DNA of 36,643 nt from the NCBI GenBank assembly GCA_002104905.1, contig MCFE01000779.1, forward strand, positions 1 through 36,643, in the 5' to 3' direction. Below, one piece after another: positions 1,829 through 36,642 of the stretch. The notes below the pieces were generated by a model. The model was not told where the DNA came from and made no database searches. It saw nothing but the letters and a program-made list of their open reading frames with translations. The position numbers were made by a program, and so were the translations under genes. Positions within the stretch are counted from its first letter, which is position 1. The number at the start of each line of letters is the position of its first letter. This DNA is from Basidiobolus meristosporus CBS 931.73 (lineage: Eukaryota; Fungi; Basidiobolomycota).

Positions 1829-3072
1829 CTCCCAGTTGTTTCATCAGTTTCAGCAATGTTGACATACTCAGGTACAATGATCTTGCATTGTAACTTGTAA
1901 ATATTGTGATCTCTGAATCCCAAAGCTAAATTTTGTCCATTTTCACTCAATATTGAGCAGCTCAGCTTAGTAAAAACAAATTTCAGTCCCTGAGTAGTTG
2001 CTTCACTGACTGAGAGTAGGTTCTTAGCTATTCCAGGTACATAGAATATGTCAGTCAGTTTTGCTGTTGTTGCCCCTGAGTTATCACTCATATTTAGTTG
2101 TATAGACCCACTGGCAGTAGCTTCCAATGCAGAGTTATCTCCCAGATAAACCTTTCTTACGGGAATAGTCTTTAAGTTGCTGAACCAATCCTTTATACCA
2201 CAAATATGCTGTAATGCTCCAGAGTCAATATACCATTCATTACTTTGGTTACTTGCACTCTCTTGTACAGTGACAAATAGCTTTTCATCAGTAGTTATAT
2301 GGTTTGCCTGCTCTAGTTTCTGTTTATCGTCTGCTTGTTTCTTCTTGCATTCTCTTGCCCAGTGTCCTGGCTTCTTACAGTAGTTACAGCAGCCAGGTTT
2401 TCTTCGGTTTTGTTGCTTTCCCTTCTTTTCTGTATGCCTTTCTGAACTGAATAAAGCATTATCTTCAATTTTCTCTGCTTGATCATTACGTCTGAGTTCT
2501 TCATGGAGAAGTCTTCCTTTGACATAGTCTAAAGTCAAGTTGTCTTCTCTGCTTTCAAAAGAAAGTATGAGTGGCTCATACTCGTCTGGTAGGCTGCAAA
2601 GCAGACAGAGTATCTTTTCTTCATCATCTGCACCAGCATTAATACTGTAAAGTTCTTCTGCAAGTGTCTCCATTGTGGTAATGAGTTGTAGCATGTCATC
2701 ATCTGGCTTTTTTCTCATGTTGAAGAACTTTCGTTTCAAATAAAGCTTGCTTGATACTGACTTTGCTCTAAAGATCTTCTCTAAGGATTCCCATGCTGCT
2801 TTGGCAGTATTTGAGGCATGGATTTGTCCAATGAAGGAGTCTTGCACATTGATGCATATTGCATTGAAGGCCTTTCTCTCCTTCTCTTGAAACTTCTCCA
2901 CATCTTCTGCTGTTCCTTTGGGCTCAACTTCCTTTCCTGTTACTATGTTCCAAAGCTTTCTTTCCTCAAGGTGGATCTGTATTTTGATTCTCCAAAGTCT
3001 GTAGTTCTTCCCATCAAACCTCTCCGTTACAGGGAAGATGTTGGTATTGCTTTGTTTGCTGGTAGAAGTCAT
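1810..3072 (-). CDS. gag: Copia gag-protease portion of the polyprotein (420 aa; frameshifted from pol near 1820)
   Basis: ORF track: FDGKNYRLWRIK N-terminus, LLCSLPDEYEPL, zinc knuckle CxxCxxxGHxxxxC, aspartic protease motif WYIDSGA. Confidence 0.92.
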   Translation of the reverse strand: MTSTSKQSNTNIFPVTERFDGKNYRLWRIKIQIHLEERKLWNIVTGKEVEPKGTAEDVEKFQEKERKAFNAICINVQDSFIGQIHASNTAKAAWESLEKIFRAKSVSSKLYLKRKFFNMRKKPDDDMLQLITTMETLAEELYSINAGADDEEKILCLLCSLPDEYEPLILSFESREDNLTLDYVKGRLLHEELRRNDQAEKIEDNALFSSERHTEKKGKQQNRRKPGCCNYCKKPGHWARECKKKQADDKQKLEQANHITTDEKLFVTVQESASNQSNEWYIDSGALQHICGIKDWFSNLKTIPVRKVYLGDNSALEATASGSIQLNMSDNSGATTAKLTDIFYVPGIAKNLLSVSEATTQGLKFVFTKLSCSILSENGQNLALGFRDHNIYKLQCKIIVPEYVNIAETDETTGRCGIGG

Positions 3073-3108: not shown

Positions 3109-3477
3109 TGTTGAAGTTTAAGAAGTGATTTGGATATAAGGAACCTATCAAGAAATAGTGATAATAGTTGAACTGTTGTTTATTCATAAAGTAGCTCAGT
3201 ATTTATACCTTTGTAGAAGTAATACAGCTGCAACACTAAGTAGGGAGGGTTTCTCAATATTCAGGAGCATTCTGTAACAGTTTCAGGGTTAGTACATAAT
3301 GTTTGGTAATAGTGCTAATTTGATGCTGACTATAGGGGAATAATTATAAGATCATATATCTGGAGAAAGTGGCAAAGTTAAGGCAGTGAATGAGTCCTAC
3401 AGTGACTAAGACTAGCCTAGAATTGTTAAGTAAGTTTTTAGCTGCTGAATGATACTAAATAGTCCAATATTTCAACA
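3109..3477 (-). repeat. Copia family A 5' LTR (369 bp)
   Basis: Termini TGTTGAA...TTCAACA (7-bp perfect inverted repeat); TATA-like GTATAAATA on the minus strand near 3200; adjacent to the PBS. Confidence 0.92.
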
Positions 3478-4400
3478 TCTTCAATGTTGTTTGCTTTTTA
3501 GGCTTTGGTCTACACACCACATTATCTCCCTGCCATGCTGTGATAGGTTGTTTGGTGGGCTTTATCTTTGGGCACTGTTGTTGTGCTTTAACAACTGTAC
3601 AGTGTTCATCTGCTGTTACATTGGGAAATGAATTAATTCTTGTCTGTGACATTGAGCTAAATGAGGTCCTTCTATGTGGCAAAGATACTCTTTTCTCTAT
3701 TGTCTGCTCATCCTGTTTCTGTTGCAATTTAAGAAGTGATTTGGATCTAAGGAATTTATCAATAAATAGTGATATTAGTTACACTGTTATTTATTAGTAG
3801 AGAAGCTCAGTATTTATACCTTTGTAGATGTAATGCAGCTGTAACACTAAGTAAGGAGGGTTTCTCAATATTCAGTAGCATTCTGTAACAGTTTCAGGGT
3901 TAGCACATAATAGTTACTGTTGGTGCTAATTTGATCCTGACTATGAGGGAATAATCATAAGATCAAAGGTCTGAAGAAGGTGGCAAACTTAAAGCTTTAA
4001 GTTAGTCCCACAGTGACCAAGACTAGTCCAGAATTGTTAAGTAAATATTTAGCTGCAGAATGATACCAAAAAGTCCAATATTTCAACTGTTTCTGAACTA
4101 TTTCCTGATCTCCCTGGGCCATTGCATATATCCTATCAGCCACTGCACCTAATTGCTTCATTAATGCCTTGGTATGAGCTGACAACATACTTGCTAATGT
4201 GGATGGTGGTAATGTTACAACAGCCACTTGCTGGTTGTCAGTTGAAGGTACTGCATTTGCTACACTCTCATCTGCCTGATCATAACAGTCAGCTTGCCAC
4301 TATGCAGAGCTTCTCAGTTCACCACTTTACTGAGAGCCAGAGGAGACCGTATTATTACCTTTGGTGGGCATACTGTCAACACAACCTTTATTGGATGCAG
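3478..4400 (-). pseudogene. Accessory ORF of CACTA copy 1 (unknown function), split by the solo LTR
   Basis: LASMLSAHTKALMKQLGAVADRIYAMA and RINSFPNVTADEHCTVVKAQQQC match ORF 21746..22390. Confidence 0.7.
3720..4088 (-). repeat. Copia family A solo LTR (369 bp) with 5-bp target-site duplication
   Basis: Colinear with 3109-3477 and the same length; flanked by GTTTC at 3715-3719 and 4089-4093; removing it restores the peptide QEIVQKQ-DEQ seen in the paralog near 22010-22040. Confidence 0.92.
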
Positions 4401-4736
4401 CCCTGCTTATTGAACTGAATGTCAAAGCAAGCTGTTGTCCAACTGTTCTTCTGCCGCCATCAGTGGTGGGGTTTGGTTGGGGACTAGACAACTTTGCTTT
4501 CTTTTTTGGCAGCATAAATATGGAAGTAAGTCAAACCATAGGAGAAATAGAGTACATATACATGAGTATGTGGTGCCACAGCATTATTTATAATGCCTAC
4601 TATGGCAGGTCATCATTGAATCCTACATTCATGTAAGTGCAATGCCTCAAGTACCAGACTGTCTTGAAACTATATCAATATTGACCAAAAAGTGATAAAA
4701 TAGCGTTAAATTGTTGAAGGCTGAGCTGTTTGCTCC

Positions 4737-6120
4737 ATGAACAAGACTACTTTGACTGAACACTGTAAAAGAAGAGAAAAAAGGCCATGTGGCTATTGTA
4801 GCAAGCCTCTCAACCATGAAGCATGCAAACTGCATAGAAAGTATTACCAGAATCATGCCCAGTGTTTTGCCACAAAAGTCATATTTGACTATTCATCAGT
4901 CACAACTGCACCAAAATTATCTTGCCAGTTGGTTGACACTTCTAGATTGCACCTGGCTGTCTTTGTAACATTTCTCAAACTGAGTCAGATGAGTTTGTGA
5001 CACCTTCAGGCTAACCTAAGCTTTCTGAATATGGCACACAGAGTGATAGCTCCGACAAAGAAGGCTTGCTGACGGATGTGAGCCTATCTCCCCTGGCACC
5101 AGTACCACACATGAGCCTAGTCAAATTCCAATATGCAATGAGACAACATCTGTTGAAACAAATGCTAGGGATACTCTATGAAGCCCAGTGACCCCAGTAA
5201 TACATCTGCTGGTGAATGAAGTAATGTAGTGGCTAGAGAAGTGGTGTGTTTCCACTGATATCAGTAATTGGGGAATTAGGAATTACTACTTTATATATAG
5301 AGCGCTTCATGCTAAATGAGCCCTGGGATATATTGTAGAAATTTGGAAGAATTGGCAAGAAATTACAAAGTGTTCACTACCCTAGGTATTTCTCAATGGC
5401 TCCAATAAGTATTCATGCATATATGCAACAGAACATATGCAAGGACTGGATGAAGTGGATATGTACTTATTCAAGTGGTGCTCTGAAGCCATCCCTACCA
5501 AGTGTACAATGGGAGCATTGGGAGTCATATGTAGGCATTGTAGGAATATTTATCCAGAAGCAGATCACCAATGCCATCTTGACACATCTACAGCTGTTGT
5601 GCAAGGAGTTAGTAATCAGATTTGAGCAGCTATACTACAAACATAAAGCTGAACATGTAAATCTGTGCAGCTACTGTATCCATTCTCTACTCTGTCTTGC
5701 TTGTTGTGTGGAGAACATTTGGCCTTTTCTTCATCTCTTGGGAGCTTCCTATGGAGCAGATATGTGGAGAGATAGGAAGACAGGTCAAGTTGCAGGTACT
5801 ACCATTTCCCAATCTCATCACAAATATTATCTTCAAGTCTGTGATGGATGTGATAAGTTGGTACATGGAGAACTGCCAGAGAGAGTTGCAAAATACTGAG
5901 GACAGATGTGCACATGGAGACACTTATGCCTATGGAACTGAGAAGCTAAGCAGCCCCAATGCGTTAGTATGCAGTTGAGTAATGCAAAGCTGGGTTGGGT
6001 GCAACAAGCAACTACTTTTTATTACGAACGCTCTACCGTAGTATGCCTGGTTTCTCTTGGACACAAGCCACCTTTTACACCATATGATATGTAACTCACA
6101 CAAATAAGAGCCAGAGCACA
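4737..6120 (+). pseudogene. CACTA/EnSpm transposase remnant (N-terminal Cys motif and C-terminal DUF4218-like region; catalytic core deleted near 5290)
   Basis: PCGYCSKPLNHE; KCKDWMKWICTYS..LKPSLPSVQWEHWESYV..RFEQLYY..IHSLLCL; WELPMEQICGEIGRQVK. Aligns with copy 2 except for about 1 kb that is missing. Confidence 0.78.
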
Positions 6121-7351
6121 TCCCTAAGCAGGACTAGAATCCAACAGGGAGAAGAAAAATACTGGCCAAACACAGAAAGGTTCTGTGCAGATATTCAGGG
6201 GGTATCCATGGCAGAAGCGGCAGCAACCAGGTATGTGCTTGCAAGATGTATATTTTACCAGCATATTTTACCAGCAATACAAGGTATATGGTGGCTTAAC
6301 TAGCATCATACTAAAAGGCTGTAAAGTTGAGGTACTAGAAGTATGTCAGTAGGAGCAGGTTTGCACATTAGTAGAAGTTAGTACGGAGGAGGTGATATAT
6401 GTGGAATACTCAAGGTAGCAGTGGGTAATCAAATAATGATAAGTGATTCTACAATGAAATATATAAATTACACAAGTGATGGTAGAAAAAGGAGACACCA
6501 ATTGGTAAATTGGTACAGTTGAATTCTTCAGTACTAGCTATAGGTCTCCATACTACCCTCATAATGTTATTAGAGAGCGGAAATGAGGCCATCAAATCAC
6601 CATCAAGTTTTTGGCCATATAGGCAATTGGATGTACTGGCAAGTAGATCCATTTAAAATAGCAATAATGTGCTCTAAGACCACAGCAATGCCATGTAACT
6701 ATTACCAGAGCATGTATGAAACCCCATCAAGTTTTGTACAGTTATTTGGCAGTTAAATTAGCCAAACACTGTTGTGATCCTGTCAAAAGATTTTCAAGAG
6801 GGTTGCTAATTCCAAGCTGCTGATATTATGATGGTCTTCAAATAGGATCCTGATGGCCAATCTAGATTGGATCTACCCACAGGACCAAACTATTGCTCAT
6901 AAGGTATTGGATCATTGACTGATGTGGTAACAGACAAACTTTCTTACACTAGACATAAACTGAGTGACATCTAGTATCTTGGTCCTCTGAAGCCTATGTT
7001 ATCACCAGAGACAGCAAGTTTTGCAGGCATTAGCTGATAATGCACAGTCACCTTGCATCTCTGAAATTTGACCACAGTGATTGCAGCCCCTGAGACAAGC
7101 CTTGTAGTCCTGGACTGTCCAGGTGGTGTTTGGAGAGCAAATGTGTCACTTGATGTCTCCTCTGTGGTGTCAGGTCATATCCTGAGGGGCGGTCATATAA
7201 AGAGTAAAAAGGGGCATGGATCAACCAGATAGTTTTTATGGATCCTGAAGACACTGAGAAGATCAGTTAGACTTGCAAACCAAGTGCAAGGCTGAAAATG
7301 ATTAGCAGCAAAAAAAGAATAAACAAAGCCCTTATTAAGGTAAAATCTCAC

Positions 7352-8894: not shown

Positions 8895-9262
8895 TGTTAC
8901 AAGTCTTGGTATAAGAGTTGTAGAGGAATAGGGAGTTTAGCTAGTATTGTATTCACTAAAATTTGAACTGCTCTTTATTGAGGTTCCAGCAGCTCCTAAT
9001 ATACATTTTGCCAGATCAATTGCTGACTAATCATATTTCCTAATGTAGGTTGTGGCTGATGACTCATTTGATTGCATCATCATCACCCAATAAGATCCTA
9101 CTTAAAATATCCATATCTGTCTGATAAGGATCTATTGATTCATTTACTGACTAATGCAACTGATTTGATAGATAATACTGATATACTGATAACCTAAACA
9201 TATACTAATTGACTTGATTAAAAGCTGATCCAACTTAAACATTCAAGCGGCAGATCACAACA
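8895..9262 (-). repeat. Gypsy family C solo LTR (368 bp) with 4-bp TSD
   Basis: TGTTAC...CACAACA termini; ATTG at 8891-8894 and 9263-9266; reverse complement of the repeats at 15504-16207 and 27539-28397. Confidence 0.88.
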
Positions 9263-10209
9263 ATTGCATATTCTTATTATACATTGCACACTCTCAATAG
9301 ACTTGTTCCATTGTACCATGCCAGGGCAAGTGGTGCAATCCATGGTCTCTAAGAACAATTGGGCATCATATTGTAGCTACCAATAGGCAGGATTGCTCTT
9401 GGACAATTTTGCACTATGTGGGACAATCTTGCACACTATGGCATAATCTGACATGATGAGGTTGGCACATATGATTGCGCCCACTTGTAGTAATTGCATC
9501 ACGTGCGCAATTGGATGTTGCCATTATGGTTGGTAAAGTCCAGTTTTTGGATATGTTTCTTTAATGTAAATGGAAATAAATGTGTATCACACTATAAGCT
9601 ACACTGATACTAACCATTTTGATGACCATCACTCCAATTGGATAGTATCTCAGTGGTTAAATGGCTGAAAAGTATCCTGAAGCTGTCAACCTCCAGTTGG
9701 ATCTTTGAGCAATACACAAGCTACCTGATTTGCCATCAAATAACCCATTTTGCCATTAAGCAAGTAAATCCTTGGTCCTAGTGATTAGGCAAGGTGTTGT
9801 AGCTGGCATGCAACCAACTGTATGGGTGCAAATTGGATCAAATGGCTGCAATGGTGCCACAGATGATGTATACATATGCAGGGTGTTTATTTGTAGTGGT
9901 CCTGTCTCAAATGTGAGACAACCTTGATACTGGTTATATCAAAAATTTAGTAATTACTGAATTGCAATGGCTTGATGCGGATTGTGAAAAAATGTGTAGT
10001 TTGGAGCATTACAAATAATAGCAATTCAATGCAATTGCATCATCTTCTCCCAGGCTTTTTTCTCACAGGGATTACAACTGAAGCATTTGGTAGTGATTCA
10101 CTTTGCACACCTAAACTACTTTCTTGTTGACTATCCTCTTGGCTACTGTGTAATTTAAGTCAGTATTTTGCCTCCTAGTTGATGAGTGCAATGCTGCAGC
10201 TTGGCTGCA

Positions 10210-11286
10210 CTACATTGCTCCAGATAATACAACTGATCTGGCCTGTAGTTCTACACGCTGACATGTTCTTTTACTTGCCAAAGGATCTGGTGGTGGAGGC
10301 ACTTCATGTGGGTCATCATCAGTCAGTTCACCAGAAGAAACTTGCTGATGGTCAGGTGTAATGGCACATGCAGATGCAACTTGATGCACTGGCATGGCCC
10401 TTGGCTGAGTTTGATGTGATGCTGCTTGTTGACGCAACTTGGCCTGCTCCAATGGACTTGTGTCTTTTTGAGCAGTTTGGTGGGCTCTGGTGGTTTTGCT
10501 CTGAAGCATGTGCATTGACCCAAAACACATTGAGTCAATGCGGGGTGCTCTTGTGAAGGGTGTTGGCATAGTTTGGACTGATGTGTGCTGGCATGCTGAA
10601 GTTGCAAGGGATGGTAAGGAATCCAGCAAGGCATGCTGGTGCAGTCTAGACAATGTTGCTTGCGGTCTGTATTTCTTCTCTTGAAGCTCACCTATGGATT
10701 CCTTAAAGTATTCACTTACCCTCTGTCTAATACTTTGGAACTGTTGGCTGGATGAGTCCTGTGTTTATTGCTCTTGGAAGCCAGTTACCTCTACTAATAT
10801 ATCATGTAATACATTGGTTATTTGAGGCAAAAACTCATTCAAAATCTCTTTGGTTCCCAAAGTCAAGGCACAAATGGATGCATCCGGCCCATACTGGGCA
10901 AATTGCATGCAAAATTGTTCCTGTGTGGTTTCCTCATCAAATCCCCGCACTCTCAGCTCATTCTTGACTTCAATACTTGTCTTGTTATATATCTTCTTAC
11001 ATACATCTGCTGACATCTTGATGTAGAAGTTATGCCACAGCTTTCTGCTCAGGTTCTTCCATCTCTGTTGACTCTCTGAGGTATCTAGTTCTGCTAGATT
11101 AATGAGTAGTGCCCAAATATCGGTATGAAGGCTCAATGTAAACACTTGGGCCATACTAAAGTCATTTGGCAAGAACTCAAACAGATCCAACATTGCCTTT
11201 TCCAGTCTGGACTGTGCTTGTGAGCTGGGGGATGGGTTTTGTCTTGGTTGAGCTGAAGATGAGCTGAGACTTGGTACAGGGACCAT
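10210..11286 (-). pseudogene. Second gene of the PHIS element (about 358 codons, one internal TAA), function unknown
   Basis: ORFs 10765..11286 and 10210..10653 are in the same frame; I translated 10654-10764 and found no stop, so only TAA at 10765-10767 separates them. Confidence 0.65.
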
Positions 11287-11811
11287 AGTGATGGATTTGA
11301 ATACTTATACAGTAGTATATTGGCATCAACCAGGTATTATATGAAATTTATATGAAAACTAATGTGATTGTTGAACTTTCCATATATTATGCATGATGCA
11401 TCTTGGATTGCATTGACATGGATCAGATCACATCAATTGCAGATTTCCTTTTGATTATAGATTTGTGAGTAAAACATCAATAAAAATACCCAGTCATTGT
11501 TTAGGGATGATTTTTGCAACATAATGATGTAATACATGACAATTGATGGAGATTTAATCATAATGCATGGAAAAGCAGATTAATAAAGCTGATTGAGCCA
11601 AATCAATCCCCTAAAATCATTTGGCAAGAACTTGAATGGATCTAACATCAACTTTTTTGGTCTGGACCACGCTTGGACCATCTACCCCAATCTACACAAG
11701 GAGATCCCTTGCTAAGCTTCTCTGCTACTACAAGAACTATAGCCCTACAAGGTTTCATCCCACCATCCATGGCAACAAAGTCCTAGAAGCTTTCATTTGC
11801 AGCTGACAGCA

Positions 11812-12462
11812 ATGGAGAACCACCTTGCAGAGGGTATGAATGACTTAGAGCAAGCTTAGAGTACTAGGTTCAGATGCTCCAATAGACTTCCATATCCCAG
11901 AGTGCTCAGCAACAGGTTCCATATAAGAAGTATTTTGGATACCTTCCCAGTCAGGATTAGAAGAACTTCTAGAGGGCAGACACACTTTTATTCTGGCAAG
12001 TACAAGGCACACTGTGTGAAGTATCAAGTGCTGTTTGATATTGAGGGAAGCACCATCTGGTTTTGTGGGCCATTTGCTGGAAGTAGGCATGACAAAGCAC
12101 TCTGGGTAGAGAATCATCCAGAATTCAGTAGAGGGGAGAAGTATATGGCAGACTTAGCCTATATAGGAGAGGATTGTCAGAGATTAGGATGTATTACAGC
12201 TTATAGGAAGCCAAGGTATGGTGTGCTTAGCAGGAAGCAGAAGCTATACAATGAGATATTTCATTATTTCAGAGTGAGGGTAGAGCATACATTTGGATAT
12301 CTGAAGAGATTCAGCATACTGGCAGGTAAGTATAGAGGAAAGGCATATATAGGAGAAAACAACAGAATAGGTAAAATAGTTAAGATACTTATCAATACAC
12401 AGTATATTCATACAAGAAGACATCCACTGAGAGAAAAGTGTCTGGAGCATTATGAAGAGTGA
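11812..12462 (+). pseudogene. DDE_Tnp_4 (IS5/Harbinger-type) transposase, 5' part disrupted
   Basis: ILDTFP, FYSGKYKAHCVKYQ, GSRHD, MADLAYIG and RVRVEHTFGYLKRF give a D-D-E triad; in-frame TAG at 11857-11859 upstream of the 186-aa ORF; the true start is probably further upstream. Confidence 0.88.
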
Positions 12463-12660
12463 ATAAAGCAAGGAAAGCACTACTCTGAGCAACATAAGTA
12501 AGGTTGAGTAAAATTACCAGTAGCTATATCCTACCACTGGCATTATGGTAGATATTATAGTGCCTGATAGTGCCAAATCAATTTGGCACTATAAACAGGC
12601 TGTCACTATGTGGCACTACCCAACGGAACAAGTCTAATATGTATCTACTACTTATGAATA

Positions 12661-15503: not shown

Positions 15504-16207
15504 TGTTATGATCTGTTGCTTGAATGTCTAAGTTAGCTGAGCTTTTAGTCAAACCAAATAGTGTTATGTGTGGCCTATCAGTATTTCAATATTATCCATT
15601 AAATCAGTACTCTAAGTCAGCAGACAATTCAGCAAATCCTTATCAGTCAGAAATAGATATATTATGTAAGATTTAATTGGTTAATGATGAGCAATCAAAT
15701 GAGTCATCAGTGACCACCTATACTTAATTCAATTGGTCTGGCAGTACATATGGAGCTGTTGGAATCTCAATAGGAATCAGTTGAAGTTTTAGTCAGTACA
15801 ATACTATCTAAACTCCCTATTCCTCTACAACTATTATGTCCAGACTTGTAACACTTGAATGCTTAAGTAAAATCAGTTTTTACTCAGATCAATTAGTTCT
15901 TTGCTTGGCCTATCAATAAATCAGTATTTGCTATCAAATCAGCAGGATCAGTCCACAGGTAAATCAGCAGATCCTGGACAGATAGAAGTAGATGTATTAA
16001 GTACAATCTAATTGGGTGACAATGATGCAATCAAATGAATCATCAGCCACAACCTACATTAGGGAGCACAATTATTTAACAATTGTTCTGGCAAATTGAA
16101 TACATGGAGCTGCTGGAACTCAAATAAAGATCAGTTCAAGTTTTAGTAAATGCAATACTAGCAAAACTCCCTATTCCTCTACAACTCTTGTATCAATACT
16201 TGTAACA
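15504..16207 (+). repeat. Two tandem gypsy family C LTRs (15504-15853 and 15854-16207)
   Basis: Both end ...CCCTATTCCTCTACAACT...ACTTGTAACA; the second lacks about 15 bp at its start. Confidence 0.85.
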
Positions 16208-16208
16208 T

Positions 16209-16218
16209 TGGTAGCAGC
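16209..16218 (+). promoter_or_regulatory. Primer-binding site for the tRNA 3' end (iMet-like)
   Basis: TGGTAGCAGC one base after the LTR end TGTAACA. Confidence 0.7.
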
Positions 16219-16472: not shown

Positions 16473-17712
16473 TGTTGCATTGTATTATGATTAGTTTGGG
16501 GCTTGTTCTACAATGTAGAGGCTAATCAACAATATACAACAACTGCCAGTATGCTAATACTAAAATAGTTTATTGGGAGTTTGATATACCAATAGAAGAT
16601 ATAAGTTTCACTAATTTCCTCAATCTTAGGCTCAAAATATACTGTAGACAGTGTTTATCACTTCTACAGCAGTGTTCTGACCTTCTGTTGACTAATGGGC
16701 TTATTTACTTTTATAGTAACTCTTCCTTATTTGGAAGTCACTTTCCTTTCTGAGAAAATATTTCCTAATATGGAAATTCTGGACTCCCCTTTAGCCTAAA
16801 GGGGTGTGTTGTAGAAGTCTCTAACGGGGTCTTTAGACCTGAAGGGGTGTCTTAAGGGGTGTCTTTAGAATAAAGGGGCTTCTTATAGTGGTCTCTAAAG
16901 TGGACTTTACACTAAAGGGGTGCCTAAAGGGGCTTCTTTAGAGTAAAGGGGTTTCTTAAAGGTGTCTCTAAAGGGGTCTATAGACTAAAGGGGTGTCTAA
17001 AGGGGTGTCTTTAGAGTAAAGGGGTTTCTTAGAGATGACTTTTCCAACAGAAAAGTGGTAGTTTCTTGTAGAACTTAGATTGGATTCTTGTGAGCTTTGC
17101 AGTTTCTTTACTGATGTAGTACTGATCAAAGTCAGAATACTCAACAGTGCAAGTGATGCAGGGGAAGTCTTATAACCTTTAAACTTGTAATTGTAGTGTG
17201 GAGATTCTGGAAAGAGAGGCTCTCTCTTTATTTTTCAGCTGGGGAAGTCATATATATGAAAATTTTGAAGGATCAAAGTCTGGGCAATTGCACAAGCAAT
17301 ACACATGATACAAAGCTAAACTTTTGCAGTAGTGCAGATCGGACATAGGCTCAGCACCTGTGAAAATTTCACGTGATTTGATTAGCTGGTTTGAAAGTTA
17401 CACGCAATCAAACTCACCATAGTAATCCTAGCAACAAGGCATAGTATACATAATAATTGGACTCTTTGGTCATAACTCCGTAAGTACTGCTTCAAATGAG
17501 CTGTAATTTGAAACATGTGTTGACTACTACGTGCTCTGTATGATATAGTATTCTTGGGTGGATTGTTTGTCAGGGTCTGGAGCATTTTCTCTTCAAAGCT
17601 GGAAATTCTTGATCTTTCACTTGTGTGTTATGATAGCAAAAAGCAAAATAAAGGAATGAGTGCAATATTGGTTTAGAGATATTGTAGTAATGGAATACTT
17701 TCCATTACCACA
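16473..17712 (-). repeat. Large solo LTR-like insertion (1240 bp) with 4-bp TSD
   Basis: TG...CA ends; GATG at 16469-16472 and 17713-17716; removal restores gag LFQDEEAF; minus strand shows TATATATG followed about 20 bp later by AATAAA near 17230-17258. Confidence 0.75.
16797..17038. repeat. Minisatellite of TAAAGGGG-core units arranged as three 73-74 bp higher-order repeats
   Basis: Higher-order units start at 16819, 16893 and 16966; about 14 (T)AAAGGGG-like cores. Confidence 0.9.
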
Positions 17713-18599
17713 GATGAAGAAGCTTTTAAGGATCAAATAATTGCCCCAGAAAGCAAGTTGCATTATGCAGTTTCTAACTTGGTAGATGCAGCTTTATAGT
17801 GGTACCACAACAAGCTTAGATCCACCACTATGATGGGATACTCAACTATCTCTACCTGGGATGAGTTTGTGTCCAAAATTTAGGATGCTTTTGAGCCTTC
17901 ACATCAGCAGACACTGCTAAGAAGGAAACTGAAGACACTCAGACAGAAAGGAATGGTTGAGGAATACACTTATTAGTAAAAATATCTGCTTGGACATACT
18001 GAAAGATTGGACCCCTATAATGAGGTTGAGTACTTGATTGATGGTTTGACCGTATGACAAATAATTTGGTCCTACTGGTAGATCCAATCCAGATTAGCCA
18101 TCAGGATCCTGTATGGAGACCATCATAATACTAGCAGTTTGGAATTAGTGACCCTCTGAGCAATAATTTGACAGAATCACAACAGTGTTTAGCTTATTTT
18201 ACTGCCAAATAAATGGATAAACTTGACAGGGTTTGATTGGTGCTCTGGTAATAATTGCATGGCATTGTGGCAGTCTCTGTGTGCTCTACAGCTATATTAA
18301 ATGGAGCTAACCAGCCAGTACATTCAATTGCCTTATATGGCAAAAACTTGACAGTGTTTTAAAGGCCTCATTGCAAGTCTCTGATGGCATAATGATGGCA
18401 TTATGGTGGCCAATAGCTAGTGCTGTTAATGCTACTGTACCAATTTACCAAAGGTATTTCCTTTTTCTGCCTCCCCTTATGCAACTCATATATTACACTG
18501 TAGAATCACCCCTCTTTATTTGCTTACCCAATACTACCTTAGGTATTCCATATATAGCTCAAATCAAAAAACCTATGACCTCCTGCTTACCAACTTCTA

Positions 18600-21348
18600 C
18601 AAACATGTATATCTGCCACAATTGACATACTTCTATTATCTCAACTTTGCAGCTTTTTATTGTGATACTTCCAAAGTTGCCATATACCTTGTACTGCTGG
18701 TAACATATGCATCTTGCAAACATATGCTTGGTTGTTGCCACTTCTGCCATAAATACCTCCTGAATATCCACAATGAACTGCTTGGTATTTTGCCAATATA
18801 TTCCTTGTCCCTGCTGGATTCTGGTCCCCATTATAGGTACTCTCTAGCTTTTGTTTGTGTGAATTTGGTATTAGACTTGTTCCATTGTGCCAATGATCAT
18901 AGTGCCAGAAAGTGCTGTATATTATGTTATTAATTTGATATTTTAGGGTTATATACATGTCAATTTTGATCCCAAATTGGCACTGTATGGCTAGTCACCC
19001 TTGTGGGTGCACTCTGGCTCTTGTTTGTGTAAATTCCATATTGAATGATGTAGGAGCTGGCTTATGACCAAGAGAAACCTGGCATACTTTGGTAGAGCTT
19101 TCCTAATAAAAATTAGCTGCTTGTTGCTCCCAGCCCAACTTTGCATTGCTTGACTGATTATCCACACATTGTGGCTGCTTAGCTTCTCAATTCCATAGGC
19201 ATAGGTGTCTCCATGATCACATCTTTCCTCAGTATTTTCCAAACCTTCCTGGCTTTCCACTATGTACCAGCTTGTCACATCCATCACAGACTTGAAGGTA
19301 ATCTTCTTGATGAGATTGAGATATGGTAGTACCTTCTACTTGACTTGTCTTCCTAACTCCCCATACATCTGCTCCATAGGAAACTCCCAAAAGGTGAAGT
19401 AAGGCCCAATATTCTCCACACACTAATCAAGATGGAGTAGGGAATGGATACAGCAGTGTCAGAAATCTGTGTGTTCAGCTTTATGTTTGTAGTATAGCCA
19501 CTCAATCCTGTTAGAGACTTCGTGCACAACACCTGTAGATGAGTCAAGTTGGCATTGGTGATCTGCTTCTGGATAAGTACTCCTACAATGTCTACATATG
19601 ACTCCCAATGCTTCCATTGTACTCTTGGTGGGAATGGCTTCAGAACACCACCTGAATAAATACAAATCCAGTTCATCCAGTCTTTGCATTTGTATTGTTG
19701 CATATGTGTATGAATATTGATTGGAGCCCATGAGAAGTACCTAGGGTAGCAGATACTCTGTAATATCTTACTAATTCTTTCATATTTCTTCAGTATCTTG
19801 TTGGGCTCATTCAGCCTGAAATGCCCCAGGTACAACTTGGTCATCAGAATTGGGATATTGTGAAAAGCAAATGCATTGCTCTCAGTGGAAAGCTTTTGCT
19901 CCAATAGACACCGTCAATCTTAAGTATCTTTGGTTTCCAATTAATTCCAAATTCCAGCCAATGGCTTAAAGCTTGCCAACTTTGCTGCAACTACATGCTG
20001 GCTTCTGTACATTTTCTCTGCAGACAGATGATGCTCTTGGTGTAGGTCTTTGGGTAATAACAATGTTTGTGAGTTATGGGGTTATTTCCTGGATCTCACT
20101 CATTTAATAGCAATACTGTTCATTGTTATCAGAAAAGCCAGTTATCTTGCTGATGGCTGGGGTATCTGCAATGCAGATAATAATATGCACTTTGACATGA
20201 TTGTCATTTACTGTTATACTGCTGGAAATCATATAAGTTTCATCCAGTAATGGATACAGGTAGCTATCCAGGTTGGATGGTGATTTAGGACCAGATACTA
20301 GTGAAACTACCATCAGATTTTTGCTCTGATACTGTATGAAAGGCAGCCAATTCTGGCTGATGGGAATTGGTGGCCAGCCAGATTTACTGGTAGAGTACTT
20401 GTTTAATGAGAATCCGGCAAGTGCTAAGGCAAAGGCATGGTCATACATACCTTTAAAGTAGCCCTTACTTCTTACCTATGTGTGATGTTTGACATCATGT
20501 ATCTTGGATATTTTTGCACTTGATTGATGCTGAGTGTGGTGCTTTATAGCTTGACAATATTTGTTGGACTGCATGAGCTTCTTTGGACAGGGTATTAATG
20601 GAATATATCCAGAGTGTGAGCAATGTTTTCCCTCAATGGTGGTAGATTCCCAACAATTTGTACACATTGCAATGATGGCATTTTGGAATGTGAGTGCCAT
20701 GCAAGTGTTAACACATGCTGGAATCAAGACATTCTCTGGGTTGTATGCTGCCAGCTGCATGATGGTTGTCCACTTGTACCATGTACATAGTAAGTGGCAT
20801 CCTAGAATAATTGTGACAAGAAGTAGTAGTAAATCCTTAAAGCCCCCATAACTGATATTTGTGGAAACGCACCACTTCTCTAGCCACTACATTACATCTT
20901 TTACCAGTAGATGGATTACCAGGCATACTTGACTCCATACAGTATCCTGGGCATTTGTTTCCGCCAGTGTTGTCTCATTGCATATTGGAATATGAATGGG
21001 CTCATGCAAGGTACTGTTGTTAGGGGAGATAGACTCACAATCAATTAGTGAGCCTTCTTTGCCAGAGCTATCACTCTGTGTGCCATAATCAGAAGGCTAA
21101 GGTAAGCCTAAAGGCATCAAAAACTCATCGGACTCAGCTTGCGCAAGGTTACATAGACAGCCAGGTGCCAAAATAGAAGTATCAGCTGGCTGCCAGGATA
21201 ATGCTAGTACAGTGGTGACTGATGAATAATCAAATATGAATTGTGTGGTGAAACACTGGCTGTGAACCTTGTAGTACTTCCTATGCTGTCTGTGTGCTTC
21301 AAGGCTGAGAGGCTTGCTACAATAGCCAATGGTCTTTTTTCTCTTCAC
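18600..21348 (-). pseudogene. CACTA/EnSpm transposase (tnp2 family) pseudogene
   Basis: ACVNTCMAL..CTNC..YIPLIP; HAFALALAGFSLNK..SGWPPIP..NLMVVSLVSGPKSPSNLDSYLYPLLDE; IICIADTPAISKITGF; KCKDWMNW..WKHWESYV. Many stops and frameshifts. Confidence 0.85.
18873..18990 (+). mobile_element. Truncated left-end fragment of the PHIS/MITE family inserted in CACTA copy 2
   Basis: ATT|AGACTTGTTCCATTGTGCCA, 19/20 identical to the left end of 9299-12635; absent from CACTA copy 1. Confidence 0.75.
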
Positions 21349-21745
21349 TTATGGTATTGAATCAAAGTAGTCATGTCCATTGGGCAAACAGCTTGACCTT
21401 CTGCAACATAACACTATTATATCACTTTTTGGTCAATACTCATATGAGTTTAAGACAGTCTTGTATTTGAAATATTGTACCTACATGAATGCAAGATTCA
21501 ATGATGACCTGCCAAAGTAAGTATTATAAGTTAAGTTGTGGCATAACATACCCATGTATATGTAGCACTATTTCCCCTTTGGTTTGACTCACTTCCATAT
21601 ATATACTGCCAAAAAATCAAGCAAAGTGGTCTGGTGCCCAGCCAAGCCCCACTGCTCACAACTGCAAAAGAACAGTTGGACAACAGCTTGCTTTTATGCT
21701 CAGTGCAACAAGCAGGGCTACATCCAAAAAAGGCCATGTTGAAGT

Positions 21746-22390
21746 GTGCCCATTGAAGGTAATAATGTGGACTCCTCAGGTGCTCAATCAAGAAGTCAGT
21801 TGAGAACCTCTGCAGAGCCACAAGCAGACTGTTATGCTCAGGCCAATGAGAGTGCAGCAAAAGCAGTACCTTCAGTTGAAGACCAGCAAGTGGCTGTCAT
21901 AACATCACCACCACCCATATTAGCAAGTATGTTGTCAGCTCATACCAAAGCATTGAAGAAGCAAACAGGTGCAGTTGCTTATAGGATAGATGCAATGGCC
22001 CACAGAAATCAAGAAATAGTCCCAAAACCGGATGAGCAGATAATATGTGTAGAGCAATCAATATCCCAGGTAGAGAAAGCAGTATCTTGGGTGCAAAGAA
22101 GGAACCCAAGTAGCCCAATTTCACAGCAAAGAATTAAGTTCTTTCCCAATGTTACAGCAGATGGACACTGTTCAGTACTTGAAGCACAACAACAGTGCTC
22201 CAGAATAAAGTCTACCAAAAAACCTACAACAGCATGGGAGGGCAACAATGTGGTGTTTGCTCCAAAGCCTAAAAATCAAGAGACATTGAAGATCCATGAA
22301 GTCATTGAGTGCAATAGTGAAGCATGGGCTAATATTCAAGCAGTCATCAGTGGTCTAGCATGCCATCACCTTGAGGCCAGCATACCATGA
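21746..22390 (+). CDS. Accessory ORF of the CACTA element (214 aa, unknown function; decayed continuation to about 23512)
   Basis: Open frame conserved at peptide level with copy 1; downstream frames 22613..23035 and ...VNDEWHKAFGFLPESW* (stop 23510-23512). Confidence 0.6.
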   Translation: MPIEGNNVDSSGAQSRSQLRTSAEPQADCYAQANESAAKAVPSVEDQQVAVITSPPPILASMLSAHTKALKKQTGAVAYRIDAMAHRNQEIVPKPDEQIICVEQSISQVEKAVSWVQRRNPSSPISQQRIKFFPNVTADGHCSVLEAQQQCSRIKSTKKPTTAWEGNNVVFAPKPKNQETLKIHEVIECNSEAWANIQAVISGLACHHLEASIP

Positions 22391-23989: not shown

Positions 23990-26900
23990 CAGGATTGAAT
24001 GAAAGAACTTGCAAGGAAGTGAACCGTTAGAGACATTAGACTATTGAAGACACCATTAAGATTGCCATTGACTATGACTCAGCTATGTTTGGAGTCATAA
24101 AGCTTGCAGTGACTAATCAGTAAAACTACAATCACTGTGAAAAATGACAATCAGCAGCAGTGACAATTGAAATGGATGCTATGCAGAAGAATTGCAGCTC
24201 AGAAGAATGTAGAAGAAAGGACTTTACTTTTTTTGCCACTAGCAAGGACATCTTGCAAAGGACTGTTCTCAGAGAAGAAATTGACAATACTCAACATGAA
24301 CCTTAAGGTATATTGAAACTCCTGAGCATAGTCTTGTAGGGGATGAGTGTAAAGCTGATTCAACACTTACCTGTTGTATGAAAGAAGAGTGCTTATCCAA
24401 AATTATCTCAAATGCAAGGATGCCATAATACTTGAATGGAACAATCATTGTGGTACCTGCCAAGATTATGATCAACTTAAGAGCCTTATACAAGTATTTG
24501 CCAGACCTATTTGCCAGACCTATTTGCCTTGAGAGCTAGGATTAACTCAGAACCTACCAAGTCAGCTTTGGAATACACATGGACACTACAAGTACTTAGT
24601 CATGAGTTTTTGCCTCAATTATGCCCCTGCAACATTCATGGCCTTGATGCATATCATCTTCCTGGAGTTCTTAGAAAGGATTGTGGTAATCTACTTAAAT
24701 GACACAATAAAGGACAATAAGACAGAAGAGGACCACTTGGTGCACATTGAAAAGATCTCAAGGAAGCCAAGAGAGAACAAGCTATACAGCAAGCTAGCAG
24801 AGTATGAGTTCTACTGGGAGCACATTCAGTATCTGGGTCACAGTGACTAGCACAGGAGTGAGCTTAGACTCAAGAAGGAAGAAGTTATGAAGAATCTGAG
24901 GCAGCCCCAGAGCATTTCCAAGCTCATATCATTTCTCAGACTGGTTTTCTATTATCATAGATTTGTCAAGTCCTTTGCAAGTATTGCAGCCCCTTTGACT
25001 GATATCCTCAACAAAGACAACACCTTAAAGTGGGTCATAGCCTGTGATACTGCATTTCAGATGCTTAAGAATGCACTTGCCAAGCTGCCAAGCTTAAGAA
25101 TACCTGACTTCAGACAAGAGCTCAATCTCTGCGCAGATGCTGCTAATTATGCTATTGGTGGAGTACTGAGCCAAGGACAGGAGAGAAAGAAACTCCTAGT
25201 TGCTTTTGAGTCCAAGAAACGGAGCTCAGCAGAGCCAGACTATCCAGCACATGAGAACACAATGCTTGTCATAATACACTACCTAAAGACATGGAGATGC
25301 TACATAGAAGTAGTCAAGTGCACAGTGGAGACTGATCATACCTAACTCAAGTGAATATTTACTCAGAACATACTATCCAGAAGAATGACAAGATGGAGTT
25401 GATACATTCCACAGCTTGACCTGGAGATTGTTTACTGCCCTGGAAAAAATAACAGGGTTGCAGACATGTTATCAAGACCAGAACAAGTTGCACAACTCTA
25501 CCTGGTCATGAGTCCAATTGGTCCAGCCTATTGCCAAAGTTCTTTCCTAATGAGCTGTATGAAGATATCATGATCATTATCCAGTATGAAGCTAGCAAAT
25601 TTGTAGTGCAGGATGACACATTTGACCAAGCTCTTGAAGGAAGCCCTATAGCCTATTGCCCCTAAGTTGCTTGTATGGACTTAGTATACAAGCTACACAA
25701 TGGATGTGGACACTTGGAAACTGAAGTAACCTATAGACTTCTAAAAGCAAGAGCATGATGGCTTAGAATGAAACAGGATATGGATAGGTTAGTGAAAATA
25801 TGCCCAAATTGTCAGAATAGCCAAGTTCAACCATGGAAAATACCTTAACTCTTTCTCTTGGAGCCTGTGAGACAATTTGAGAGATGGGGAATTGACTTAT
25901 TGGTAGATTGCCTACTACTAGAAAATGCAATCAGTAGATTTCAGCAGCAATTGACCATACCACCATATGGCCATTGGCTAGAGCTGTACTAACAGCAAGT
26001 GAACAAGAAGTTGCAAGTTTCATCTACCCCACATTCCTGATGAAGTGTGGATGTCCTTTGGAAATCTTGACTGATAGAGGAGCAAACTTTATTGCAAAAA
26101 CATTTGAAGCATACCTGGAAATGCAGCAGATCAAACATCTGAAAACATTGGCATATCTATGCTTAACCTAACAGTATATCAGTATTATCTATCAAATTAG
26201 TGGTATTAGTCAACAGATGAATAAACACATCTTTGTCAGACAGCTACTGATGTAATAGACTTATTCCGTTGGATAGTGCCAAATTGGGCCATGAGTGCCA
26301 AATGATGCCATAGTGTGCCAGAGAGGCCAAGTGAACCTATAGTTGTCCACAGAGTGTAAAACATAGCTCTGCATCTTCATGCAAAGCAGCCCCTGTGTTT
26401 CACATATGATGCAGAAGAAAATCCATTTTTTGATGTTTTTTGTGTATCAATGTTGTGCAGGATGTGTAAGCGCACAGAAGAGCTGAAGACATGCATCAGG
26501 TACTCATAACCCATGGCACTCTGAATCTAGCTTCTGTGGCTTGTAACATGTCAGAAAACTGCATGGCACTATCTTAGTCCACTGGTACTATCTGGTACTA
26601 TAAGTGCTTTGTATAGATCTTACTTTAGGGCTAATAATTAAATATAGTGCCAGATAGTACCAGTGGACCAAGATAGTGCCATGCATTTTTCTGATATGAA
26701 ACAAACTAAAGAAGCAAAATTCAGAGTGCCATGGTTAATGAGTACCAGATGCAAGTCTTCAGCCCTTCTGTGCTCTTAAGCATCCTGCACAACATTTATC
26801 CAAAAAAATGGTTAAAAAATGGATTTTCTCCAGCACAATGGGTGTAATACAGGGGCTGCTTTGCATGAAGTTGAAGAGCTATCTTTTACACTCTGTGGCC

Positions 26901-27538
26901 AAGTTTAGGTCTACTATGCTTTTCTGGCACTTAATGGCACTATTTGGCACTCATGGCTCAATGTAGCACTTTCCAACAGAACAAGTCTAGTTCATAGGGA
27001 TGCACTGAAGCTTGCAAGTCTTGCTGGCAATACTGTGCCATTGAGATATTGGCACCATACAGGAGCAGATTCAGGGGAACCCACTCCACTCTAGTAGGGG
27101 AGCATATTTTGATCTACTACTTGAGTGTTTAAGCTAGATCAGCTTTAAGTCAAATCAGTTAGTTTGAAGTTAAACCCATTAACATATTGGTGTTGTCTAT
27201 CAGGAGGCACAGGCCATAGTCTCTAAAAGTGCCAAAACAATGTAGCAGAGAGTTGATATGACTATATCACCCAAGGCTTTGATAGTTGGGAGCTTAGTAT
27301 TGCTATGAAACAACACCTGGAATAAGTAAGAGTTATAATGAACAAGACCATTCAAGATCATTAGAGAATGTCCATTTGCAGCTTACCAACTAGTAAGTAA
27401 ACAAGGAAATACCCATAAAGATCTATTCATAGAGAGAGACATACCTTGCAAGACTTACTGACAATGCTGAAGCATCAAGATACTGGTACCACAAGGGAAG
27501 ATATTCAGAAGAGGCTTCTCAGATTTAGTGGGGACAAT
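23990..27538 (+). mobile_element. pol: Decayed, scrambled Ty3/gypsy family C internal region (gag C-terminus, knuckle, RT, RNase H, integrase)
   Basis: DTIKIAIDYDSAMFG; FCH*QGHLAKDC; YKYLVMSFCLNYAPATFM..VIYLND; ADAANYAIGGVLSQ..VETDH; HNGCGH..CPNCQ; LTDRGANF; PFKII near 27350; purine tract GGGGACAA before the LTR. Confidence 0.85.
26257..26988. mobile_element. Fold-back MITE (732 bp): 346-bp inverted arms around a 40-bp spacer
   Basis: Arms 26257-26602 and 26643-26988 are reverse-complementary; termini AGACTT(A/G)TTC; flanks AAT and AGT. Confidence 0.92.
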
Positions 27539-28397
27539 GTTATGATTTGATATGCCAATATTCAAGTCTAATTGGCTTTTAGGCAAATCAATTAGGTTTT
27601 TGTGTAGCCTAGTTGTAAATCAGTATTCTCTATCAAATCAATAGTGTTAGTCAGAGGATGAGCTTGCAGCACCTTATCAGCCAGATACCAATATATTGGG
27701 TAAGATCTAATTGGGTGATGATGATGCACTCAAATGAGTCAGCAGCCCCTGTGTTTCACTCATTGTGATGGAGAAAATTCATTTTTTGACCTTTTTTTTT
27801 GGTCAATATTGTAAAGGATGTGCAAGTGCACAAAAGGATTGAAGATATGCATCTGGTACTCAATACCCATGGCACTCTGAATCTAGCTCCTGTGGCTTGT
27901 AACATGTTACAAAAATGCATGGCACTATTTTGGTCCACTGGGACTATCTGGCACTATAAGTGCTTTGTATTGAGCTTACTTTAGAGCTAATATTTAAATA
28001 TAGTACCCAATAGTACCAGTGGACCAAGATAGTGCCATGCATTTTTGTGCAATGTTACAAGCCACAGGAGCTAGATTCAGAGTGCTATGGGTATTGGGTA
28101 CCAGATGCATATCTTCAATCCTTTTGTGCACTTGCACATCCTTTACAACATTGACCAAAAAAAAGGTCAAAAAATGGATTTTCTCCATCACAATGAATGA
28201 AACACAGGGGCTGCTTTGCATGAAGATGCAGATCTTTGTTTCACACTCTGTGGGCAAGTATAGGCTCACTTGGCCTCTCTGGCACACTATGGCATCATTT
28301 GGCACTCATAGCTCAATGTGGCACTATCCATCAGAACAAGTCTACTTTTAACTGAACCCCCTATTCCTCTACAACCCTAATATCAAGACTTATGACA
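27539..28397 (+). repeat. Gypsy family C 3' LTR interrupted by a MITE
   Basis: Starts TGTTATGAT after the purine tract; resumes after 28343 with CCCCTATTCCTCTACAAC...TTATGACA. Confidence 0.8.
27741..28343. mobile_element. Second fold-back MITE copy, left arm truncated by about 128 bp
   Basis: Same arms and spacer (27959-27998); right terminus GAACAAGTCT followed by ACT. Confidence 0.9.
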
Positions 28398-28995
28398 GGT
28401 GAAATGTCTGAAATATTTGACTCTCTTACCCTCACGTAAGTTTCAGATTATATACATAATATTTGGTATTGGTGCCGCTTAGATCTTGACTGTAAGGGAA
28501 TATGAATATGTTCTTAGATCTCAAAGAAAGTGGTAAATTCAGGACTGTAACTGAGTCCTACCATTACAATGTCCAGTCCAGAGTTGCTGGGTAAGTAATC
28601 AGCTGCTGAAAGACGCAATATAGCTCAATATTTTGACACTCCCCTTGAACTCAAAAATTTCTTGATCCCAATGTATTGCTGGGCTTTGTAAACAGTGGCA
28701 TAGCTAATGGCTTTGATAGTATATATAGAAGCATTTTTTCAGTTAGGTGGTAAACTAAATCTACTAATCTATTTTCTACTGCTCCCCTGACAAGGTTGTG
28801 TTGTATGCATAATTGATTAGCTCTGGCATGATGAGTGGGATTTCTAGCTAGAGAGATAATAACTTGGTCATACTTGCAAATGCAAGTTGATTCTAAAGAA
28901 TTAAAACCTAGGTCATTGAATGCTTCAATTACCATATAGCATCCCAAATTGCTTACAAGCTGCCAGATACTCGGCCTTAGTTGTAGTTGGTGCAA
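28398..28995 (-). mobile_element. Copia family A-like 3' remnant: RNase H, polypurine tract and partial 3' LTR (28398-28638)
   Basis: IWQLVSNLG..DQVIISLARNPTHHARANQLCIQHNLVR..TEKMLLYILSKPL; PPT CAAGGGGAG then TGTCAAAAT; the LTR aligns with 3360-3477. Confidence 0.82.
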
Positions 28996-34740: not shown

Positions 34741-36642
34741 CTATTCTCCTCTTCCAGGCAAAGCTCTGTTTCCCTTTGGGGTAGGTTTTGCAGGATATTG
34801 TTGGTGGAACTGGGTAACTAGTTCTTGACAATTAGTGAGATGTGTAGCTGGTTCCCATGTTTGGTCACTTGGGCCATAACCAATCCAGTCTACTAAGTAG
34901 CACAGCTTTGACCGGATATACTTGGAGTCTAGAATCTGTTTAACTTCAAATTCTTGATGTTGGTCAACCTGGATAGCTTGGGGCTTTGCTTCTTGCCGGT
35001 TTGGCAAGGTGTTCCTACAATACGGCTCCAGTAGGGACACATGGAAAGTATCATGGATTTGCATACTTGCTGGTAACTGTAGCTGATATACTATAGGGCT
35101 AAGCTTTGTCTTGATCTTGAAAGGACCAAGTTTCTTGAAATCCAATTTGTCACAAGGGCGGTTGGTGCTGATGTTTCTTCTGAGCAGCCATACAAAATCT
35201 CCTTCATTAAGATCAGGGCTGGGATGCCGTTTTAGATTGGCAAATTTCTTGTAGCTTTCCTGAGCTAAGGATAGTTCTTCCTTGAGGGTATTCTGGATGT
35301 CCTGGATTGCTTGGGCATGTTCAGCCGCATGTGGGCTCATTGGGTTTGTTGGGATCTGGATATCAAACTGAGGGTGGAATCCATAGTTTGCATAGAATGG
35401 TGTAAAACCGGTTGCACTATGGCTTGAGTTGTTGTAGGCAAACTCAGCAACAGGGAGTAGATCAACCCAATTGTCTTGCTGGTAATTGATATAGCACCGG
35501 AGGTATTGCTCTAGAATCTGGTTGATTCTTTCAGTCTGGCCATCAGACTGTGGGTGGAAGGCAGTAGAGAGCTTGACTTGAACACCAAGGTATTGCATGA
35601 AGTGTTTCCAAAACTTGGACACAAACTGTGGGCCTCTATCTGACACAATATCACTGGGGATACCATGAAGGCGGAAATTATTCTTCAGGACTAAAGCAGC
35701 AGTTTCTTTTGCATCAGTGTTCTTACAGCAAGGGATAAAGTGAGCCATCTTGGTCAGCCAGTCAGCCACTACAAGTATAGCATTGAAGCCACATGACTCA
35801 GGGAGGTCAGTAATGAAGTCCATAGATATAGATCTCCATTGGTGTTCTGGGATAGGCAGGGGTTGAAGAAGTCCATTGGGCTGGTGTCTGGCTGGTTTTG
35901 CACGGTTGCAAATATCACAAGTCAGAATGTACTCTTTGATAAGAGTTATCATTCTAGGCCACCAGAAATCTCTTTTGATAGCATTCAAGGTTTTGGCAGT
36001 ACCAAAGTGGCCTGCAGTCATTGAATCATGCCAAGACTTAATGATGTCCAGCTGGGTGGCAAGGTCTGGGACATAAAGCTGCTGCTTGTGGTAGATGAGG
36101 TTGTTTACCAAATGCAGGTTCTGGATGTTTGGGAACTTGGGAGGGGGCCGAACTGGGGATTCCAGATATTTCTTGATGGTGCTGGAAGTCATATCAGAGG
36201 CCTGGGATTCTGATATCCTTACTAGGGATGAAGGGACAACAAGACTTGAGGACTGGGTGGCAAGAATCTCAAAATGTTTCTTGCTCAGCAGTGGGTGTTC
36301 CATTTGCCAACAGGCATCATCTCCCTCTTACAGGGCATATTCCTTTTTTCTGGACAGGGCATCAGGCTTTCCTTGCTTTGCACCAGGTCTATAGGTGATA
36401 GTAAAGTCAAAGCTGGACAGGAAGAGTGACCATCTGGCTTGTCTCTGGTTTAGTACTTTGGAAGTTGCAAAGTACTCAAGGTTCTTATGGTCACAGAAGA
36501 CTTTGATTTTGTGTTTTGCACCGTCCAGGTAGTGTCTCCATTGCTCAAAGGCCACAATGATGGCAAGCAACTCCTTATCATAGATATCATAGTTGATCTC
36601 TGCAGGGGAAAACTTCCAAGAGTAGAATGCAATGGGGTGCAA
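34741..36642 (-). CDS. pol: Gypsy pol: RNase H - integrase - chromodomain (single in-frame TAA at 36328-36330)
   Basis: [36 protein letters not shown]; [12 protein letters not shown]; [21 protein letters not shown]; LGPFKI; [26 protein letters not shown]. The two ORFs in the track share one frame. Confidence 0.95.

Follow-up and report, generated by a model that had tools for sequence, protein, structure and literature searches.

Two fold-back elements in Basidiobolus meristosporus, probably mobilised in trans by a Pangu-type PHIS transposon family

We analysed a 36,643-nucleotide stretch of the fungus Basidiobolus meristosporus CBS 931.73 (Basidiobolomycota; assembly GCA_002104905.1, contig MCFE01000779.1, positions 1 to 36,643 of the forward strand), hereafter the window, and report on two palindromic elements in it, FB1 and FB2. 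Most probably, both are old insertions of one non-autonomous fold-back element that was mobilised in trans by a Pangu-type family of PHIS (PIF/Harbinger-ISL2EU-Spy) transposons, one decayed member of which lies at 9299-12635. The termini of the fold-back copies are the terminal inverted repeat (TIR) of this family in its right-end version, followed by the array of AGTGCC motifs that marks the right end of the transposon.

Structure of the fold-back copies and the type of their ends

FB1 is 732 bp long, and its inverted arms make up 346 + 346 of these bases round a 40-nt loop, i.e., it has the architecture of a fold-back element. This 346 + 40 + 346 palindrome at 26257-26988 had been proposed in a first-pass annotation of the window and is confirmed here both by an inverted-repeat search, with the ends trimmed to the shared termini, and by BLAST. 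The untrimmed inverted arms (26250-26602 and 26643-26995) are 353 nt long, 83% complementary, and spaced by 40 nt; seven bases at each outer end belong to the flank, which leaves 26257-26988 as the element itself. The two arms align without gaps over 346 positions at 83.5% identity (BLAST). Folded as RNA, FB1 is predicted to form a single long hairpin of -468 kcal/mol versus -197 +/- 6 in shuffled sequences (z = -42). The longest open reading frame (ORF) of FB1 encodes 52 amino acids (aa), and the element is accordingly small and non-coding. No tandem arrays were found in the fold-back arms by repeat search, only scattered AGTGCC-type motifs.

The second copy, said to lie 750 bp away, is present, with its start 752 bp past the end of FB1, but it is incomplete, its left arm being without the outer 128 bp. 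The FB2 arms share 93.6% identity over 218 bp. Two mirror ORFs of 103 and 110 aa in FB2 have no Pfam match and are not kept in FB1. The features of the two copies are as follows.

26257-26988, no strand: FB1, complete copy, termini AGACTT...AAGTCT
26257-26602, plus strand: FB1 left arm, 346 bp, with a right-end-type terminus (25/28 to the transposon right end, 19/28 to its left end)
26603-26642, plus strand: FB1 loop, asymmetric, 40 nt (36 of 40 positions shared with the FB2 loop when read directly, 10 of 40 in reverse)
26643-26988, minus strand: FB1 right arm, 346 bp, with a right-end-type terminus (24/28 to the transposon right end)
26254-26256, no strand: left flanking triplet AAT of FB1, a candidate target duplication whose partner AGT differs by one mismatch
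26989-26991, no strand: right flanking triplet AGT of FB1; paralogous host-repeat copies show AGT at the matching place in a gapped alignment
27741-28343, no strand: FB2, without the outer 128 bp of the left arm
27959-27998, plus strand: FB2 loop
28344-28346, no strand: ACT triplet adjoining the intact FB2 right end, with ACT in all three paralogous host-repeat copies

The transposon with which these copies share their termini has the following parts.

9299-12635, plus strand: Pangu-type PHIS transposon, 3337 bp, with AAT on both sides and an 11-bp exact TIR
11902-12462, plus strand: DDE_Tnp_4 transposase ORF, 186 aa, without an ATG and with its upstream part broken (Pfam PF13359, E 6.6e-21, profile positions 1-153 of 158)
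10210-11286, minus strand: second, divergent gene (ORF2), split by a stop and with no Pfam domain
12555-12635, minus strand: transposon right end, the only part homologous to the fold-back arms; four AGTGCC/GGCACT motifs lie in the last 150 bp

Its TIR, AGACTTGTTCC, is exact at both ends over 11 bp and starts with AG, as the TIRs of Pangu elements may do. By its described features (a PHIS-type DDE transposase, ANT target, TIR, ORF2, and length), the transposon fits the Pangu group, the comparison being one of descriptions rather than of a tree. Ahead of the DDE domain, the transposase frame (11676-11901) has many stops and no ATG. A spliced transposase was considered and rejected: a GT...AG candidate immediately precedes the DDE ORF, but its phases cannot be joined to the DDE frame. 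A word-based protein search for relatives of the transposase gave a single match with 36% identity and from it no other members of the family. Within the transposon, 65 bp from the 5' region of ORF2 (11156-11220) recur in the intergenic space (11611-11675, 77% identity).

The description of FB1 as a non-coding fold-back with the termini of the local DDE_Tnp_4 transposon is borne out by the shared termini and by the absence of any ORF longer than 52 aa. A terminal word of 23 nt is found at four places in the window versus zero expected: at both FB1 ends, at one FB2 end, and at 12613-12635, which sits 150 bp downstream of the DDE_Tnp_4 ORF. Over the first 28 bp, a recount gave exactly the matches proposed earlier, i.e., 25/28 between the FB1 left arm and the transposon right end, 24/28 between the FB1 right arm and the same end, and 19/28 between the FB1 left arm and the transposon left end. 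The two transposon ends differ from each other at nine of these 28 positions, and at those nine FB1-left, FB1-right, and FB2-right are of the right type at seven, seven, and eight, respectively, and of the left type at one each.

The AGTGCC/GGCACT motif points the same way. Per kb, FB1 has 13.7 motifs and FB2 10.0; the figure is 26.7 for the rightmost 150 bp of the transposon, 0 for its leftmost 150 bp, and 0.47 for the remainder of the window. In the arms of both copies, AGTGCC is directed inward-forward near the tip and reversed beside the loop, which is also the order found in the last 85 bp of the transposon right end. A left-type end at 18873 carries AGTGCC, so the motif is not strictly a right-end mark across the family. 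TIR positions 10-16 separate the end types more cleanly: both left-type ends of the window read CCATTGT, versus GTTGG/GATGG in the three fold-back ends and the transposon right end. The diagnostic TIR positions and the distribution of AGTGCC together support the assignment of both FB1 arms to the right-end type.

Beyond the terminus, arm positions 1-35 match 12635-12601 at 83% and positions 1-54 match 12635-12584 at 74%, and the homology returns in an inner patch of 21 bp, where arm positions 327-347 match 12575-12555 at 86-90% (BLAST). Apart from a large interior without a match, the arm is therefore colinear with about the last 85 bp of the transposon right end.

Movement as a unit and insertion into a host repeat

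The loops of FB1 and FB2 are identical at 36 of 40 positions when compared directly and at 10 of 40 in reverse. Because this asymmetric loop is conserved in one orientation, the palindrome and its loop moved as one unit, and separate formation of the palindrome in each copy is ruled out. The first-pass annotation had suggested comparing arm with arm against copy with copy, and this check was run: a four-way arm alignment of 217 columns has 14 informative sites, of which 13 are mirrored within a copy, none is arm-specific, and one is crossed. With separate formation excluded by the loop, the mirrored sites indicate that the arms of a copy were homogenised in the source lineages. The 13 mirrored differences between the copies also make it unlikely that FB2 is a local daughter of FB1.

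In the shared part, private changes number 14 and 15 in the two FB1 arms and five and six in the FB2 arms. Of 69 private arm substitutions, 35 run from G/C to A/T and 14 in the reverse direction, a pattern of decay rather than of stem maintenance. As judged from the alignment, evolution of the arms was concerted in the source lineage, and they drifted apart after insertion.

Both copies lie within a 354-bp host repeat (R), whose pieces next to them are listed here.

26156-26254, plus strand: R before FB1, 80% identical to 9202-9109 and 72% to 15898-15996
27538-27740, plus strand: R before FB2, R positions ~1-202
28349-28403, plus strand: R after FB2, R positions ~320-368

Elsewhere in the window, R is found at 8895-9262 (minus strand), at 15504-16213 (plus strand) as two tandem units, and at 27107-27265. 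FB1 splits R at position ~155, and R resumes downstream in a gapped and decayed form. The right end of FB2 meets R at ~320, and upstream of the copy R ~1-202 joins directly to arm position 129, the junction falling on a CAGCC microhomology common to R and the arm. The two copies thus occupy different R positions, and R goes on beyond each of them. The simplest history for FB2 would be that a complete copy entered R at ACT and that a later deletion of ~240 bp, at the 5-nt microhomology, took the left tip and the adjacent part of R. R covers ~5% of the window and is partly tandem, yet it holds both fold-back copies; target preference, local hopping, or chance could account for this. R also ends 36 bp from the left end of the transposon.

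Proposed mechanism and competing explanations

In the mechanism that we propose, the transposase, probably with the ORF2 protein, would attach to each of the symmetric ends through the TIR and the AGTGCC motifs, and the bound element would be cut and pasted into A-N-T targets. The palindrome would have arisen once, likely during gap repair after excision, when a nascent strand copying inward from the right end snapped back and copied itself. Copying from arm to arm would then keep the arms alike in the active source lineage, and drift after insertion would have added ~8% per arm in FB1 and 3% in FB2.

Several observations weigh against mobilisation by this family or limit how far it can be traced. 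The local transposon is decayed (no ATG transposase ORF, ORF2 split) and therefore cannot be the mobilising copy. The window holds only two copies, one of them truncated and the complete one with an imperfect triplet; a scan of metagenome contigs for a conserved arm word of 19 nt returned 26 loci, each a lone chance match of 20-43 nt, with no palindrome among them. Moreover, the interior of each arm, ~270 bp, has no match in the transposon and no source in the window (BLAST). The idea that the element was built from two copies of one end holds for the tips, both of right type over the outer 35-54 bp, and for the 21-bp patch; with ~270 bp per arm lacking a counterpart, derivation from the right end of the local transposon is shown for the tips only.

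The target sites add to these points. The flanking triplets are AAT/AAT for the transposon, AAT/AGT for FB1, and ACT on the one intact side of FB2. All triplets thus read A-N-T, as in the ANT duplications expected for this family, but in the one complete copy AAT/AGT is not a perfect duplication. The paralogous R copies hold AGT at the FB1 place and ACT at the FB2 place, in gapped alignments of 70-80% identity. The three element junctions are as compatible with a 2-bp TA duplication and GACTT termini as with ANT, and when FB1 is compared with the paralogous sites the TA reading needs fewer gaps. The TTA/TAA duplication typical of Harbinger elements was also considered, and it fits none of the junctions.

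A one-ended fragment at 18873 bears on the choice between ANT and TA. Its flank terminates in ATT, and the copy of this host sequence has ATT and then G, not TA; the A of AGACTT therefore belongs to the element, which favours ANT. The fragment is a 134-bp piece of the transposon family (18873-19006) whose first 16 bases all match the transposon left end, with no right TIR. It is flanked by a host duplication of ~37 bp (18836-18872 and 19007-19046), and an inverted paralogue of its host element, near 6140-6180, is empty at the matching site. From this arrangement the fragment looks like an aberrant or one-ended insertion or a repair event.

The fold-backs might instead come from a different autonomous subfamily, one in which both ends were already of the right type or in which the right subterminal region held the ~270-bp arm interior, so that the likeness to the local right end would be kinship. 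Homology to the local transposon does end after 35-54 bp and returns for 21 bp near the loop only, and the AGTGCC at the left-type end at 18873 makes that motif non-exclusive to right ends. However, the window has no symmetric autonomous element, and TIR positions 10-16 keep the two left-type ends apart from the group of three fold-back ends and the transposon right end. We regard this origin as unlikely.

A bolder version of mobilisation by the Pangu-type family, for which we see only a slim chance, is that the fold-back is an "optimised-end" parasite. Such an element would have two copies of the right end, supposed to be the better-bound one, and in each arm two motif arrays, one near the tip and one next to the loop; it would out-compete its parent for transposase, and its arms would be recopied in each excision-repair cycle. 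If true, the recopying would account for both the origin of the palindrome and the mirrored substitutions. As a weaker addition, read-through hairpin RNA might feed silencing aimed at right ends.

That the element works as a silencing locus seems very unlikely. In this explanation, FB1 would be a hairpin-RNA locus whose small RNAs repress the transposon family as Mu killer does MuDR, or a precursor of microRNAs or small interfering RNAs derived from a miniature inverted-repeat transposable element (MITE). A transcript, if made, would be a nearly perfect hairpin with a 346-bp stem (predicted fold). Sequence support for the earlier suggestion that such double-stranded RNA could silence the family is lacking, though: the longest exact word common to the fold-back and the transposon is 13-14 nt, and with either ORF 10-11 nt. 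With shared words of at most 14 nt, small RNAs from FB1 or FB2 could match other fold-back copies only. The arms, with their 69 private substitutions, are decaying freely, and this speaks against selection on the stem. Rfam gave matches to long, MITE-like plant hairpin microRNA precursors, centred on the loop (26511-26735), which might seem to favour such a locus, but none reached its gathering threshold (bits/threshold: MIR2630 75.1/144, MIR7807 49.6/90, MIR1428 40.6/79, MIR812 39.1/80). These matches reflect the generic hairpin shape and are an artefact of it, as such models score any long perfect hairpin.

Finally, although both copies lie within 2.1 kb and in the same host repeat family, we give almost no credence to the idea that the palindromes are immobile inverted duplications of ordinary sequence formed in place, since the copies sit at different host-repeat positions, end exactly at the transposon TIR, share a conserved asymmetric loop, and differ by 13 mirrored substitutions.

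Relation to known elements and setting of the window

Pangu elements of the PHIS group have 5'-ANT-3' duplications, TIRs of 11-40 bp that start with AG or GG, a mean length of ~3487 bp, and two ORFs, of which the second shows no known motifs (Han et al. 2015, Mob DNA 6:12; PMC4482050). Their transposases form a clade next to bacterial IS5. The parent transposon here is alike in its 3337 bp, its AG-start TIR with 11 exact bases, its AAT on both sides, and its DDE_Tnp_4 gene accompanied by a domainless second ORF, and the fold-back copies share the termini of this parent and have flanking triplets of the A-N-T form. The difference is that no fold-back derivative is described in the Pangu survey, which was based on transposases and, by its own account, could have overlooked MITEs (PMC4482050).

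Fold-back DNA transposons such as Drosophila FB, Galileo, and Tetris have long inverted arms that make up nearly the whole element and a short middle domain (PMC4079207, PMC4168063). The first-pass annotation had considered the long arms unusual, but a class of long-armed fold-backs is already described (PMC4079207), and in kind the architecture is therefore nothing unusual. FB1 and FB2 resemble these elements in being non-coding or mostly so and in having arms with extra copies of a putative protein-binding motif. Those fold-back transposons, however, belong mostly to the Mutator or P superfamilies, with 7-10-bp duplications and in many cases tandem subrepeats in the arms, whereas FB1 and FB2 belong to a PHIS lineage, with a probable 3-bp A-N-T target and scattered motifs of 6-7 nt rather than tandem arrays.

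Tourist-type MITEs, which derive from PIF/Harbinger elements, have TIRs of ~10-30 bp and TWA duplications. Like FB1 and FB2, they are small and non-autonomous, have only terminal sequence in common with a PHIS transposase source, and are presumably cross-mobilised; the fold-backs differ from them by an inverted repeat of 346 bp per arm and by the probable A-N-T target.

A precedent for the use of one end twice is mini-Tn7, a version of which with two right ends is reported to work (Arciszewska et al. 1989, as cited in PMC9308760). As so cited, it shows that a substrate with the same end on both sides can be used by a transposase whose natural ends are asymmetric. It differs in being bacterial, with an unrelated transposase, and in being an experimental result.

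If our explanation is right, FB1 and FB2 extend the Pangu branch of PHIS by a non-autonomous fold-back family with the same end on both sides; they do not make a new class of element. They would provide a clean and small example of a palindromic element that moves as a unit and whose arms evolve in concert in the active lineage and drift once inserted. What the window supplies is two old copies, one of them probably truncated by a microhomology deletion, together with paralogous empty sites in the host repeat. The finding could guide a test of end preference in Pangu transposases.

The window as a whole is repeat-dense, with ~39-40% G+C, and rich in Copia and Gypsy elements and DNA transposons. 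CpG is depleted to an extreme degree, the observed/expected ratio being 0.07, with two CpGs in FB1, none in FB2, and 13 in the transposon. Retrotransposon genes lie at 233-3072 (minus strand), 24887-25345 (plus strand), and 34741-36642 (minus strand); they include a Copia-type gag and integrase/reverse transcriptase in long open frames, an RNase H fragment of Gypsy type, and a Gypsy integrase ORF of 520 aa that is apparently intact. Two inverted repeat copies of 3.4-4.2 kb (3477-6905 and 18049-22293), ~80-82% alike, bracket the transposon and a Copia fragment, and their ORFs (e.g., 5396-5899 and 19353-19904) have no Pfam domain. At 16765-17057, there are four tandem units of ~73 bp made of CTAAAGGGGTGTCT-like subrepeats.

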